From Saccostrea echinata (lineage: Eukaryota), in NCBI RefSeq assembly GCF_033153115.1, contig NW_026889761.1:11470001-11534000 (forward strand): 64,000 nt of DNA, given 5' to 3'. The position numbers were made by a program, and so were the translations under genes. The notes under the pieces were generated by a model. That model ran no database searches and was not told the DNA's origin. It was given only the letters and a program-made list of their open reading frames with translations. Positions 47,601 to 56,600 of the stretch are shown here, in pieces; within the stretch, counting starts at the first letter, position 1, and the number at the start of each line of letters is the position of its first letter.

Positions 47601-50600
47601 GAATTAAACCAAATCGCAAACAATTTCCAGCAAAAGAACGGATTTCCAGGGATTGCTGGTGCATTAGATGGGACTCATATTAGAATAGCAAAACCAACAA
47701 ACCATGGAGATTCATACATCAATAGGAAGGGATTTCCTTCCTTGCAGTTACAAGCGGTATGCAAGGAAGACATGATGTTTACTCATGTATTTACCGGATT
47801 TCCAGGAAGCTGTCACGACGCAAGAGTTCTTAGGAATTCCGATTTATGGGAAAATGGATTACAAATGATTCCAAATATATACCATATCATAGCTGACGCA
47901 GCCTATCCACTATGAATATGGCTACTCACTCCCTACCGAGACAATGGTCACCTGACACACGAGCAACGCCGCTATAACAACTACCTGTCCAGCAACAGAA
48001 TGGTAATTGAGAGAGCATTTGCTCTTCTGAAGGGTAGATTCCGCCGATTGCGTTTCCTGGAAACCCAGAAAATTGAGTATGCTGTCAATATTATCATGAC
48101 CTCTTGTGTTTTACATAATGTCTGCATTTTCAACCATGATGAAGTAGACGATTTCATTCAGCAAGATGTTATTGCAGCAAATTATAATGTTCCAGGAATC
48201 CAGGACTGTGAAGCCCAGGGTGTACAGAAACGTAATCAAATAGCCAGGAATCTTTTGTGATAGGCTAACTTCAGAATGAATGCATCATGTTTTTAAATAT
48301 CATATTCAATAAAGAATACAGTAACTGTTCAATACAATTTAATACAGAAAAATATAACAATGTAACAAAACTCAACAAAAGATGTCAAATCGAACTTATA
48401 TGTTTTTTTATGTAAATAAAACTATGGAACATGTCAAAAAGAGTAAGATATATCTTGACAGGTATTTAAAGTCAGCTGTAAAAAGTCCTTTACAGATTAA
48501 TTCACAGATGGTTTTGATGAAATTTAGAGTGTAATCCATGTATTAAGACTACATGCCACAAACATTCTTTTCCTTACAGCTTAAAAGATAATAACAACAA
48601 ATAATACTTAAGTTCAATATATCATGGTCATGGAAGAAAAAAAAGATTGTTTCTCCAATAGACATTGCCATAAATGAACGTAATACTAGGTCAAAAAATT
48701 AATCATTCATTGCAGCTGCCTATACAAATCCACTTATAGATTCAATGAATCTACCCCCCCCCCCCCCCCCCATTTCACCTATTCGTCAAAATTATTTTTT
48801 AACACTTAAGTTTAAGAGAATTTAGTTTTCTAAGCAATAAATATTACAAAAATTTTACTTAGTTCTCAATTATGTCCATCAATGAACTTGGTTAGGGACT
48901 CAAATAAAGCAGGCTGGTGCATTCAAGCATCCTTTAAAAGTCACAAGATTTGTAATGTATAAAAGCCAAACTATTTCTTTAAAAAAAACTATCTAGCCAC
49001 TCTTAGAATTGTGGGTAAACAACTGCAAACAAAGTTTTTTTTAGCTGTAGCCAAGTCTAAATTACATGTAATACATTATCCATCCATGTTTTTTTTTCAG
49101 TTCCAAGCAAGTAATCATGAACTAATGTAGAAAAAAATGTTTAATACTTGGACATAATAAAATAGAAAAATGATAATGAAAATAACCTATTTGGGAGTTT
49201 GTAGTAAATAATAAAAACTATTTGTTAAATTGTACCAAAACAAAATAAAAAATGCAAACAATTCTGACTAGCAATTATCCAATAACAGTTTGTGTAATGT
49301 ATAGTACATAGTTGAATTTTCAGGAGAATAACTTTTCCTCTGCAAGAAAAAAAATCAACAAACAGATGAAACAAAAACAACTGCATTGCTTTCAGTGATA
49401 AAATGAAATATTGAAAATCCTACCACAAATACTTTGAAAAGTTTTATGGCACAACTTAGAACAAGTTTTAAAAAATGAAAGAAGCCATTCACTATTTTGT
49501 GCCCTTGTGGTTAAGAGTCTATGTAAAAAACACTTTAACTTTTTTCGCAATTCTTGATCTGCATATTGGACAGACTTCTAGAGCTTTGCTGCATGGAATA
49601 CAGCACACAAGGTGGCCACAGTCAACAAACACTACTTCTTTTGGATGACTTTCTTCCATGCAGATTTCACATTCACCTGAAAAGAGATTATATCAACAAA
49701 AATTAAACAGGAGTTCCTATGCGCAAAGTCAAGATCATGTAATATGTAATCTTTAACATGGAGTAAGAACTTATAAATGGATTAAATGTAACAATAGTAC
49801 ATGATTGTACATGTATTGTAAAAATAATGACCAAACGCATGTAATGAAATGTTTCCTACTCTTTGATTTCAAGGAACTTAATGTGTACATGTATTTAATA
49901 TAATAATGTTAAAATTAAAATTAGATAATTCAATTCTCTAAGGATTTATACAAAAAGTACAAGTAAATACATGTAATAATAATTTTCAGCCATATGCATA
50001 TTTTAATTTTATCATGTAAGGATATTTGTGCTGAGCCAAGGTAAAAGGAACACAACACTCACTAGTGATGTGCTCCCATTGTCTCAATGAGTTTTTTCAT
50101 CAAATCCATCTTTTCATAATGCATTTTTTCTTTACGCTCACTTTCCTCCTTTCTTCTTTTTTCCTGATTTTCAATGAAGTTTTTCATTACATCAATGACC
50201 TCTGTAGAAGTAGATGTAAGCTTTCTTTTCTTTGGATTAGTACCTGAGCCTGATGGTGTGGGCGTAGACGACCTTGAACTCTCATCGTCACCATCCTCTG
50301 AATCGTTGGGAACTTCTGCAGAAATTTTGGAGTCAGTGCTACAGGCAGTTACTTCTGGAGTAATGGCAGGATCTTTGGAATATATTTCATCCAATTCAGA
50401 CTCATATTCAAAACGCTTTCTTCCAGATCCACTTTTCTTCTTACTGTCTTTGACTGCTTTGTATCCTCTCTGCAAAGTCTTCCATCTCCCTGAGACTTGC
50501 TCATGATTATAGGAGTATCCTTCATCTTTCATCCCTGTGGCAATTTCCTCCCACATGGTTTTCTTCTTGATCAAACCTTTCTTAATTTTCTCTTGATATG

Positions 50601-53600
50601 TTTTGTATTTGGTTATAAGAAGTAAGGTACTAGAGCGTGTCCAAGACATACCTATATCCGCAGTACTGCATGAGGCAACTTTACTCTCCTTTTCATCTCC
50701 TAGAAAACATTAAAATTAATAAATATATACTTTCAATGCTTAACATTTAAAAAAAATACATGTTAGACACAACCTGTTACATGTATTTATTTATGGTGTT
50801 TATTCCAGAATATGAAGATCATATACTATATAGAATTACTGCTTTTGATTAACAGTTTCAATATTTTTCTCTTGACGTGAAATATATCTACTCCTATGTA
50901 ATTAGTACAAAATTAGTTACTACTTATTATGGGAGGAGGAAATATTAATCTCCTGAAAGTGCAACCTCCCAGGTATACTCATCTGTAAAATTTTTAACTT
51001 TAACATTAATTACCTGATGATGGTGTCCCTGCTGGTGGTTTCTGACATATGTGCTCAGACATCAACTCCATGTCGTTGAAGTATATGCTGCACTTCTGGC
51101 ACTGGGTTACCGTGCGTTTTTTCATTTGACTTTCGGCATTAATTTCATATGCTGTTTGTTTTGTCACAAGGATGGAATTATTTCCTCCGCCTAAATGAGA
51201 AAAAATATCTTTTATACTAATAGTATACATTAATATCAAAGTACATACTGCTGCATTGCAAAAGATATAAATGGCAGAATTAAAAAAGGGGGAGGGGTGC
51301 TAAAAGGTAAACATTCATTTAGTTAGTACCATTTGGATATGCTTTCGAAAAAAGATCGCCGCTGTGATCGACCCCTTTCCCTACTATTACAATTTTTACT
51401 TGTCCTTTTTAATGCACTTTTTTCCTCGTAAATATGTCATTTTTTTAGGTTTGTACCCCCCCCCCCCCCACTTTCCCTTTAAGATTTTCTTGACCCATCT
51501 TGGGCCTTTATGATGGCTAATAAGGTGTGCACTAAATATCCCTATAAATTTAAGTTTTTAAATAAGCATTTGCAGTAAAACGTATGCACAGTAACAAAAC
51601 TTACTTGATTCCGTTGTGCATCTATGCATTTTAACATCATCTAAGCTGGAAAAGTACAAATTGCAGTCTTCACATTGATAAAGCACGTTTTTCTCCGCCA
51701 TTTTTGTTACGTAATAATTCCCGCTGCACCACCTCTTTAGAAAGGACAGAGAGAATCCGTCCGGAATCGGATTCCAAATCATTCCATTGCAATTCTACGC
51801 GTTCTGGATTTTCGGAAGCGTGAAAGGAACGCACCCTTAATATTTTACATCACTTTCATTTTTAAGAAAAACATAGGGCAAGATTTGTATTGAAACCATA
51901 CCTTGTTCTTTCTCATTTCATGATTACATGAAACCTGAATAGCAATTGTCAATGTGCCTATTCCCCGGGCTTGATCGGTCCTTCACCAGATTGCTCGCAA
52001 TTAATCGGTATTCAATTCTTGAGATAGGATTTCTTGTGCAATGTTTGCCAAACTGGGATTGTGTAGACTCTGATAATATTAAAGTTCATAATCTATGGAA
52101 TATTTCTGACACGTCCTTTAATTATTTTCTTGAAATTATCGTCTCGTCCAGTCGAAATAAGTTGTGAAGCGATTTGTTTATATTTTACCAATAAACCAAT
52201 TAATTATATCAACACTCGGACGACTCACAGGTGTAGTATCATCTATGTAAACACACAATTAACATGTCAATCCCAGCCCCAGGCATTCACTGTTATCCAG
52301 GTAAGTCCAAGCTGCATTAAATTTACGCTTAATTGGCCTGTATACATGTGCAATCAAAACTTCAAGAGATAGAGAGTAAAAAACAATGAAATATGTGTAA
52401 CGGGACCCAGATCTTGGTTCTCCAGATAGAGAACTTCGAGAGATCAGGAGTTCAAGAGATCAGGAGTAAATTTACTTAGTTATATAGAGAAAAAAAACGG
52501 GACCGGAGGTTCACTTTGAGAGATCGAGAACTTCTCGAGATCAGAGTTCGCGCCATCTCGAGTCACCTGTATTTCATCTGCTAAATCCTATTTTGAATGA
52601 ATATTTGCACAGATATAAATATAAACAATAAAATGTCTTTCTTTGTTTGTTAGTACGGGAATTAACATTGCAGCTATTGCTGAAAAAAATTACATAACCT
52701 GCTTATGCTGGTTATGTAATTTTTTCTGCAATAGTGCAATGTTAATTCCCGTAATAACAACCAAAGAAAGCATTTTATTGTTTAAATTATGCCAAATGTA
52801 TCTATAATGACGCATGTATCTATAATGACGCATGTATCTATTATAACACATGTATCTTTTATGCCACGTGTGTCTATTATGACACGTTAACCTGGAGATT
52901 TTTTTCCTCTTCATGTTCTGGGTCACTTCCCCAGTCCCATTCCGGAATGTCAGGGTTACATTTAGGAGACTTTTGTTCTGGAACTTTTACAGTCTGAAAA
53001 AAAGTTTTTCTCAATGTAATATGCAAAATCGAAATTTTACAAACTAAATAAAGTCAACTGATAAAAATATGTAAGCCATGCACAAAAGGTTATTCATTCA
53101 GATTCAAATTTATCATAAAAATATCAATTGATAATGAGATCCTGATATGGTTTTGAAAGAACCAGTGTAATGATTCATACATTTTATAGAAAACTGAAAC
53201 ATTGTACTTCTGCCAGTGTCCTATATATACATGTATCTCAGAATATGACTGGAATCTGATTTATACTGAATAATGCCATCATATTTCATTTGCATAACTA
53301 ATTTCATAGTCTACAACTCTGTAATTTATACATTGTACTGCAATGAAATAGGGGAAAATGCATTACTGTGAACTTTGACTCCTTGACTGGTTCGCTTACA
53401 AACTTTGACTCTTTCACAAGTTCAGTCTTAAACTTTGACTCCTTGACTGGTTCCAATGTGAACTTTGAATCCTTGACTGGTTCCAAAGTGAACTTTGACT
53501 CTTTGATAAGCTCACTGCTGTGGTCCCCCTGATCTGCTCCAATATTGCTGTTTACTTTCTCACTGTTTTGGACACTATTATGAGCATGCTCAAAGATATC

Positions 53601-56600
53601 AGCCTCCTCCAGCTCTTCCTGTTCCTGTATAATCATTGGAGCTGACACGGGTCGATTTTGATAGTCCTTAGGACTTTTGGACCATTCATAATGTCCATGT
53701 TTGTACAGCTTTCTCTCTTCTGACAATTCTTTTGCAACATCCAGCTTCATCTACAATTTAATGTTGAATTCAACACAAACAAAACTTCCACCTATGCAGA
53801 GTATCTGATGCATTCCACTACCTGAGCAGATGCTCTGAACTACAGCCTTACCAGTGGATTATTTGAATTTTTGTAGGCCATGGACCTGGAATGAACCAAG
53901 GGGTAATGGAATCCCTTTTCTCCATAACTATATGCCCCAGGGCTAAAATGGAGCTCAACATGGAAGCGTTCTGATGAGGTACCCTATAAAAGAGCATGAA
54001 GCTAAAAAGAAAAACTGGTTAAAACCCATCAAAATCAGACATTTGTTGAATGATCTGTGAGTATAACATCTATGATTACTTAGATAAATTACTGTACATG
54101 TACTTCAGTCACTTTCTGAAACTGGAAAACTGACAAGATTTGATGAGACTTGCACTGTCACAGTGTTCAAGATATCATTTACACCCAAAATGAGTGTACA
54201 CAGCTATATACTGGTACATGTAATGAAAATTATTAAGTCATGTGTCTTGCATTTGAATCGCAAAATACCTTAACCCAAAAATGTATCAAGTGAAAACATC
54301 TGGAGTTTCCAAGCACTACAGTGTGTGAGATATGATATGTACATGCTTTGAATGAGCATTACACATTTTTTTTTTTTAATAATACAATTTTACGTTGTGC
54401 CATACTCTTTCCTCCCATGGTGCTTCAGTTGACAAGGTTTTTATGATTTCCACATTTTGTGTACAAGTGAGATTAGTGTAAATGGACACAAAACAGCTGA
54501 GAGACAGGTTTTGCAGACAAAAGACCTCATACCATTATATGGTTGTCAAAAACTCAAAGTATAAAAATAACCAGGACCGAGGAAGAGACCTGGGCATTTA
54601 CTGGGATAAATATGGTATACATGTACTTTAATAATTAGATCTAAACTATTGATGCTCTGGCTGTTATTATGGGTGTCATTTTAAATAGTTACCTTGCTTG
54701 GGTCCTCAAACATCATTACAATGATTTGGGACATGTAATTCAGCTCTGGTGTATTGTTTATAAAATCCATTGCTTTCTTCCACTGCTCATCAGATGCCTC
54801 CTGAAATATAATTATAGATTTATCATATTGTATACTGCATAGGAACATTATTACACTTATGCAAGAAAAGTTTACCTCATCATACTGCAATAATTTTTGC
54901 TATAAATTTAATACTTCTTATTGAATGTGCCTTCAGTTAACAAACATGGCATAGAGTCACTAACTTTCTTTAAAATGCAGACTTTTTCGCAGAGTAGTCA
55001 GTACTTTCAAGTACAGACAAAACTTTCACACGTGCAGATGGGTAAATTTGAAAGAGGAAAAAATTACTGAAAATCTATATTGCATTACTTAATAATTTTC
55101 TTATCAGTCCCAAAATAATTATTCATAATTACTGAAAATTTTATTAGTTAATTTCTGAATCAATAGCCCCTCCCCCCCCCCCCACACACACACACAGATG
55201 GTAAAGAAGATTTCCACTAGGCACTAGGGTAATTTATTGAATTGATACTCAACAGTATATTAAAGATATTTTTTTCTAAACAGTAAATTTAAAACTGCAT
55301 TAAAATGCTTACAAATACATGAAATTGTCAACAACAACAACAAAAATCAAAGTACTGAAAGTACTGGGAAGCGCTATGCAATGTTTGAAATTCATCAGAA
55401 TTATTTTGAATTTAAATTGCCTGTTGTATTGGAAGAAGTATTATGTTGACAGTGCAACCGCGCTGGGGTGAGCACAGTTCTTCAATACATATTCACTTAA
55501 TTTAAAATAAAACTTATATCCGCCTTTTCAAACCAGACGAGGAAACATTTGAAGGTTCGAGATTCTCCGTTTCTTTATAAAAAAAAATATATATATATAT
55601 AAAAATTAAATAACAGATATTTAGTCCAAACAGTAATGTATTTCTCAAACCTAATAAAAAAAAAGAAAGAAACGAAAAAAAGAACATGTAAAAATATTTT
55701 CGTTCTCCATCGCCTTATAGGAGTCTATAAGAGGTAGGTTTGCGTATAAATCGCAATTCATTGGGGGGGGGGGGGGATGGTCGACGAGCTTTCCAACCAA
55801 ATTTAGACTATAAATGTAGCTATACATTTGCTGGAAAATGTATATTTTTAAATAATTTTGAACACAAAAATGTCGCTGATATTCCTCTCATTAATGTGCA
55901 ACACTGATAGCTAAAATGTTCTGGTGATAATTTTTAATAATTCATTCCGTGTTCACGAGTGTTTCAAATTGAAGATGGCTGTTTGTGATTGTGAATTAAT
56001 TTTAGAAAGTGCTCCAAAAAAATAAAAATGTTATTTTTTATTGCGTCGATAAAATTTTTCCTTATTGATAACATATTTTATTAAAGTTATGAATTAAAGA
56101 TCTAAAAACTATCGAATACTAGTATTCTCATTTAATTGTTTTTTAGTATATCTCTTTTTTTTCATATTCATGAACGATTTTTACATTTACTAATCTGTAG
56201 AAAGGATTTTACAAGAAATAAATTAATGGAGTGTGTAAGATATTTACACAATCGCTACAAGCGTCCGGTATTTATTAATGATAAATAAAACTTAGACTAT
56301 ATATTTCATTTTGTTTTAAATATGCTACAGCTGTGCATTATACATTTTTTAAACTTCACATTCATCGCGCTGTGCAGCATATTGGCATCATCATATGAAA
56401 AAAATCTATTAAATGAGCACCCGTAGAGTTTACGTCATTTTGTTAGAGATAATTGGTAAAATATACATTTTGATTATAATTAAGGATATTATATTTGTCT
56501 TCTTCGTTTGATGATAACACATTCAAAGCTATCCTTTACATCTGATTTTCATATACATGTACATGATTTATAATGTATTTGCATAAAAAAATTAGTCTTT

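Follow-up and report, generated by a model that had tools for sequence, protein, structure and literature searches.

We analysed a 64,000-nucleotide stretch of the Saccostrea echinata genome (contig NW_026889761.1, positions 11,470,001 to 11,534,000; hereafter the window), which carries a copy of a PIF/Harbinger DNA transposon at 45205-51836, and we conclude that the accessory gene of this element is quite probably a two-output gene, in which shared zinc fingers are followed either by a Myb tail or, through alternative splicing, by a RING domain of the type found in IAP proteins. Comparison of related elements and proteins shows a single accessory gene with one zinc-finger head and two alternative tails, and shows that this organization is conserved. 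An earlier note on this DNA had predicted such a switch, and rereading of the minus strand found its exon coordinates, its phases, the internal donor at 50652/50651 and the acceptor at 49677/49676 to be correct throughout.

The accessory gene lies on the minus strand. Exon 1 (51605-51701) provides the ATG start and a first zinc finger of the form CxxC-x12-H-x-C, for which Pfam returned a weak zf-C2H2 match (E 1.3e-3), and it ends in phase 1 at the donor TCAA|GTAAGT. Exon 2 (51014-51190; 177 nt) encodes a second finger of the same form, is in phase 1 at both ends and closes with the donor CAG|GTAATT, so both fingers are present where the earlier note had placed them. Exon 3 starts at 50699, after ...ttctag, with a shared linker of 48 nt (50652-50699) that ends at an internal phase-1 donor, ATA G|GT ATG (AG|GTATGT at 50652/50651); this donor lies one codon 5' of the ATG of the Myb open reading frame (ORF) and is, among the phase-1 GTs of the window linker, the closest to the donor consensus. 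Beyond it, positions 50651 to 50062 hold a Myb/SANT (trihelix) domain, a coiled C-terminal part and the stop, a segment that is translated in the Myb isoform and would be removed with the intron in the RING isoform. The Myb ORF (50649-50062, stop codon at 50064-50062) matched Myb_DNA-bind_4 in Pfam with an E value of 2.4e-14. It is followed by a non-coding, AT-rich interval of 385 nt (49677-50061), which contains ATTAAA at 50007 and 49899 and finishes with a pyrimidine tract and AG.

The terminal exon (49519-49676, minus strand) opens at a phase-1 acceptor (49677/49676) preceded by ctcttttcag, encodes a C3HC4 RING of IAP type with the tail ...KVFFT and ends at the stop TAG (49521-49519). Pfam assigned it to zf-C3HC4_3, the family that had been expected, with an E value of 1.7e-11 and 44.1 bits against a cut-off of 27, and all eight zinc ligands are present. 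Domain searches were made exon by exon, and natural scallop proteins, described below, stood in for the joined forms. Exon arithmetic gives 480 nt and 159 amino acids for the spliced product with two zinc fingers and the RING (ZnF-ZnF-RING) and 912 nt and 303 amino acids for the read-through product (ZnF-ZnF-Myb), the same lengths as had been predicted. Because exon 1, exon 2 and the linker all end in phase 1, 3 donors (51605, 51014 and 50652) are in frame with the RING acceptor at 49676. Upstream of the first Cys pair, the RING frame of the window copy holds 7 open codons and no ATG, so the whole RING can be translated only after splicing to an upstream coding exon. This bears on the proposal that the RING is a small independent gene inside the element, with its own promoter and start codon, which we regard as extremely improbable: an in-frame ATG does stand a few codons upstream of the first Cys in 2 of the 3 sister families introduced below (B and D), but in family A, to which the window copy belongs, and in family C there is none and the RING cannot be translated by itself, the sole ATG of family A comes after the first CxxC and would lose two zinc ligands, and a splice acceptor lies directly upstream of the RING in every family.

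A DNA search of the whole assembly (923 Mb) identified 11 copies spanning the region from the Myb stop to the RING, with 98% identity, and a protein search with the RING returned the same 11 places at 96-100% identity, the next-best match reaching at most 53%. The RING ORF is intact in 10 of these 11 family A copies, the window copy carrying the majority sequence, and both the internal donor and the RING acceptor are invariant in all 11. The exon also lies inside the terminal inverted repeats (TIRs), as had been claimed, with the ends of the element placed at 45205 and 51836 by homology among the copies. The RING exon is part of the mobile element and not a private insertion. Two other origins were considered and ruled out: a host IAP gene interrupted by a transposon, since the exon is found in every copy and inside the TIRs, and a recent capture from a host gene of the same genome, since outside the family the genome has no RING with more than 53% identity.

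By crossing the matches of a Myb search with those of a RING search we found 3 sister families in the same genome, so that the exon is present in 4 families and is not, as the earlier note had allowed, a later insertion in one copy. The Myb of family B (L072, L075) is 48% identical to that of the window, that of family C (L073, L076, L038) about 39% and that of family D (L074) 32-41%. All 3 are old, low-copy families with 2-5 copies at 77-94% identity. In each of them the RING exon lies 200-450 bp 3' of the Myb stop on the same strand, and in families B and C a convergent transposase lies downstream of the RING. In all 4 families the RING is immediately preceded by a pyrimidine tract and AG, and the distance from the exon start to the first Cys codon is 2, 5, 5 or 26 nt, which is phase 1 each time. 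Of the features that the earlier note had proposed to look for in sister elements, the phase-1 acceptor is kept in full and the donor in part: in families A (G-M-S-W), B (G-N-S-W) and D (G-G-F-W) the linker has a G|GT immediately 5' of the Myb domain, and family C has none. Family B has an additional donor, AAA G|GTAAT, four codons further upstream. The single decayed copy read for family D (G000:C1:41000600-41000740) carries one more intron within its Myb domain, which families A-C do not have.

Comparison of the RING between families gave proportions of non-synonymous differences (pN) of 0.35-0.41 and of synonymous differences (pS) of 0.64-0.92, the synonymous sites being saturated, in agreement with the non-neutral evolution that had been anticipated. 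The zinc ligands are kept across families except for an in-frame TGA at the position of the third Cys in the decayed family D copy, and alignment between families succeeds for the RING but fails for the interval before its exon. Taken together, the saturated pS, the lower pN, the kept ligands and the unalignable interval argue that selection has evidently maintained the RING over the long time in which these elements were active. The genome also holds Harbinger Myb genes further removed from the window family (27-32% identity; L055, L057-L066, L069-L071); these have no RING within 1.5 kb, and the RING appears to mark one clade of Harbingers.

One further donor, TA|GTGAGT (50063/50062; 50057-50064, minus strand), overlaps the Myb stop codon of the window element, and joining it to 49676 restores TAG; the RING exon could therefore also serve as a 3' untranslated region (UTR) exon of the Myb mRNA. 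Family B lacks this overlap, TAA TAA preceding its next GT. A Myb-RING fusion protein is ruled out, because the junction restores the stop in family A and because in family B the TAA TAA is reached before any donor. The same donor is what speaks for the RING exon being an untranslated relic, that is, a captured host fragment used as a 3' UTR exon or not expressed at all. We consider such a relic very unlikely, given that the frame is open in 3 of the 4 families and broken only by the ligand-codon TGA of the decayed family D copy while the other ligands are kept and pS is saturated, that the phase-1 acceptor is kept in 4 of 4 families, and that isoforms ending in a RING are annotated in the scallop Pecten maximus.

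These scallop isoforms came from an exhaustive HMMER search with the RING, which returned many IAP-like proteins and one protein of 133 amino acids in which a finger of the element type is followed by a RING. A cluster look-up identified it as Pecten maximus XP_033740288.1 ("LRSAM1-like isoform X2"). Its sibling of 154 amino acids (XP_033730555.1/XP_033758991.1, "APD1-like isoform X2") is a ZnF-ZnF-RING protein, and the isoform X1 partners XP_033730554.1 (306 amino acids), XP_033740287.1 and XP_033758990.1 are ZnF-ZnF-Myb proteins named "trihelix transcription factor GT-1-like" or "uncharacterized". The Pecten maximus RefSeq annotation thus contains pairs of X1 (Myb) and X2 (RING) isoforms that share their zinc fingers at 3 loci, the same pair that had been predicted for the oyster element. 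The NCBI annotation pipeline normally issues further isoforms only where transcripts back them. The X1 and X2 proteins do not differ in either finger or in the linker as far as ...SSEK, after which they diverge into G-NPISTCTW... (Myb) and E-CVVCMED... (RING); this split, EK|G against EK|E, is the outcome expected of a phase-1 split codon, and the EK|G split aligns with the AAA G|GTAAT donor of family B. ZnF-ZnF-Myb proteins belonging to this family also occur in Dreissena polymorpha, and a Dreissena Myb protein was the sole match of window exon 3 in the protein database. The annotated protein relatives found for the window are bivalve. The search with the scallop X2 protein matched only its own cluster, and no names came from looking up the clusters of short RING proteins that lie close to the element RINGs.

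The scallop isoforms and family B also help to decide which donor reaches the RING. In the closest competing account, the RING is coding but is reached solely from the exon-2 donor (51014>49676), as a plain alternative last exon or by skipping of exon 3, and the GT at 50651 is simply part of a glycine codon. This junction is in frame, exons 1 and 2 both ending in phase 1, and family C, which has no internal donor, must use the donor of an upstream exon. In family B, however, zinc finger 2 and the Myb domain are encoded in one exon, so that only an internal donor can reach the RING there; the scallop X2 protein retains the whole linker to one residue before the Myb part, and a linker G|GT before the Myb domain recurs in families A, B and D, with the extra one upstream in B. 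On balance we judge exclusive use of the exon-2 donor unlikely, and we infer that the junction 50652>49676, read here from sequence, would be the one used in Saccostrea echinata.

Regarding the nature of the RING, its best matches in the PDB were cIAP2 (E 2e-9), BIRC7, cIAP1 and XIAP (E values to 1e-8), ahead of MYLIP, MDM4 and MUL1, and its tail, ...KVFFT, resembles those of IAP RINGs in having an aromatic residue two places before the last; the attribution to the cIAP/XIAP type made in the earlier note was therefore well founded. Pfam detected no BIR domain in any exon or ORF of the element, so the RING protein is not an IAP and only the RING is of that type. A structural model of the RING homodimer had a predicted local distance difference test score (pLDDT) of 81, and its runs agreed in 100% of contacts; the modelled interface comprises residues 15 and 17-23 together with residues 44 and 46-51 of the C-terminal tail. 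The homodimer score was 0.34, compared with 0.01 for the best control, but it is barely above a mark that 21 of 30 proteins solved as pairs attained, against 0 of 23 solved as single chains, and it may reflect memory of solved IAP RING dimers. The model would accordingly be read as likeness to IAP RINGs and not as binding. In function, the RING isoform would most likely be an E3 ligase that works as a RING dimer. In a tree of RING domains 4 element RINGs were loosely grouped, apart from the main IAP RING clade of the genome, with weak resolution, the 48 columns of the alignment being too short to test a single origin.

Besides the narrow margin of the dimer score, several observations weigh against a two-output gene switched at the linker. 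In family A a junction from the exon-2 donor at 51014 to the RING would be in frame just as well, so the internal donor is not the sole option; nor is it universal, as family C lacks a G|GT ahead of its Myb, and there the RING would have to join the phase-1 exon-1 donor. Divergence within a family, as compared among family C copies, is the same in the RING exon, the intron and the Myb, with no sign of selection, as expected for dead copies, and lineage differences within family A likewise show uniform decay. The 48-column tree fails to group the window RING with the other element RINGs. The Pecten maximus isoforms are automatic RefSeq models. Finally, the transposase of the window copy is broken, an in-frame TGA at 47913-47915 standing against a sense codon in 8 other copies.

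Considering the evidence as a whole, we favor the two-output gene, and the following mechanism is proposed. Reading through the linker would yield the 303-residue Myb/SANT protein, which would act as the DNA-binding and nuclear-import partner of the transposase. Joining a phase-1 linker donor, most likely the one at 50652, to the phase-1 terminal exon would remove the Myb part and attach the RING, giving the 159-residue protein. Which isoform is made is probably decided by competition of splicing with polyadenylation at the interval's ATTAAA signals (50007 and 49899), in which retention of the interval would lead to the Myb protein and its removal by splicing to the RING protein. Lacking the DNA-binding part but keeping the zinc-finger head, the RING isoform would be drawn to the partners that the Myb isoform contacts through its N-terminus, most plausibly the transposase or the transposition complex, and it could conceivably control how stable or how active the element's own proteins, or a bound host factor, are, a suggestion in which we place low confidence. 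More broadly, and tentatively, it is possible, though on present grounds doubtful, that a bivalve clade of Harbingers has long carried its own E3 ligase, spliced on demand, which may mark either its own transposase, in a self-limiting or activating manner, or a host silencing, repair or cell-death factor. Such an element would offer a counterpart among transposons to viral E3 ligases.

The element as a whole belongs to the PIF/Harbinger superfamily, as shown by a DDE_Tnp_4 transposase, a Myb/SANT second gene and short TIRs at ends defined by its copies. The window copy measures 6.63 kb (45205-51836), its ends being set by homology among the 11 copies, which are 95-98% identical to one another: the 10 other copies begin aligning at 45204/5 and cease at 51836/7 (the left edge at query position 205/206 of window:45000-45650 and the right edge at 437-445 of window:51400-52100). 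An inverted repeat, GGGTGCRTTCC, at 45205 and 51836 coincides exactly with these homology limits. The left TIR (45205-45215, plus strand) reads GGGTGCATTCC and the right TIR (51826-51836) reads GGGTGCGTTCC on the minus strand, both identified from the sequence and the homology edge of the copies. Families B and C are bounded by the same kind of TIRs, and the terminal motif GGGTGCGTTC at the ends of family B copies is the same motif as that of the left TIR in the window. The window copy, the one copy whose flanks were read, is bordered by CAA (or TCA) at its left end and by TTA (or TAA) at its right end, with no clean 3-bp (TWA) target site duplication. Further out, the segments 45000-45201 and 51910-52100 are unrelated high-copy repeats, each with at least 30 copies at 89-99% identity, in a repeat-rich stretch.

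The transposase coding exon (DDE_Tnp_4/Plant_tran; 47250-48260, plus strand) is convergent with the accessory gene and is broken in the window, its two halves matching DDE_Tnp_4 in Pfam with E values of 4.7e-19 and 5.4e-5; together with the Myb_DNA-bind_4 match, this confirms the Harbinger-type transposase and Myb/SANT gene that had been recognized before. The window copy is dead as a source of transposase. A second in-frame TGA, at 47313-47315, was seen by eye in this copy just 5' of a conserved F-R-x-S-R-x-T-F. A probable first transposase exon (ATG ... ATG|GTAAGT) is suggested by the sequence at 45298-45411 on the plus strand, where Pfam gave no match.

Family A copies outside the window are about 4.97 kb long, and the window copy is longer because about 1.66 kb of extra DNA (45510-47170) lies inside its transposase intron, homology to the other copies ceasing at 45509. 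This copy-specific insert contains a 156-bp satellite of 9.2 units with 91% matches at 45655-47089, followed by (GACG)n; each satellite unit includes a minus-strand ORF of 42 amino acids, which is probably meaningless. Another family A copy (G000:C62:2704645-2715155) spans 10.5 kb end to end, about twice the usual length, presumably through a nested insertion. Outside the element, an ORF of 148 amino acids at 53304-53750 (minus strand) is built on a 30-bp (10-residue) tandem repeat and resembles the Pfam "Decapeptide repeat region" below the cut-off (E 0.0035).

Harbingers are the textbook two-protein DNA transposons, and a ubiquitin-ligase module has not been described for them in the literature searched. 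What the present element adds is a RING that it carries itself, which appears to have been kept through divergence saturating the silent sites and to be wired to the accessory gene by alternative splicing. If this is true, it would bring ubiquitin-based post-translational control into the life cycle of a cut-and-paste transposon. The system is clean and testable: its two isoforms have a common N-terminus, the family is young and counts 11 copies, and isoforms are annotated for a related family in a scallop. It also has a practical side, as such transposon genes are now named as host "trihelix transcription factor" or "E3 ligase" genes, which inflates the counts of RING and IAP-like genes in bivalves.

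Canonical PIF/Harbinger elements encode a transposase and a Myb-like gene, both of which are required for transposition (PMC9179366, PMC2836001), and the Myb protein binds the ends of the element and brings the transposase into the nucleus (PMC9179366). Harbinger3_DR of zebrafish and PIF/Pong/Ping of plants resemble the window element in their DDE_Tnp_4 transposase, Myb/SANT (trihelix) gene and short TIRs, but they have no RING or ubiquitin-ligase module, and no alternative C-terminal module has been reported for their ORF1; the accessory gene described here additionally has one or two C2HC fingers at its N-terminus. A full-text literature search on Harbinger elements with a RING, an E3 or alternative splicing found no such element described. 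In squamates, "harbingerTRIM" denotes a host TRIM gene that adjoins a Harbinger and is not encoded by it. The Pecten maximus X1/X2 loci follow the same gene plan as the accessory gene, and their RING tail is close to that of family B, but they are named, automatically, as host genes and not as transposon genes and are only about 40-50% identical to the window family. With the RINGs of IAP proteins (cIAP1/2, XIAP and BIRC7/ML-IAP) the element shares the C3HC4 pattern, the (V)F-x-x-CGHL core, the CP-x-CR motif and a short tail whose third-last residue is aromatic, whereas the BIR domain is theirs and is absent from the element. A precedent for a RING E3 module in a transposon-derived protein is provided by RAG1 and the RAG1-like transposases, which carry an N-terminal RING; in these members of the Transib superfamily the RING is located within the transposase itself and not, as proposed here, in an alternative isoform of an accessory protein.

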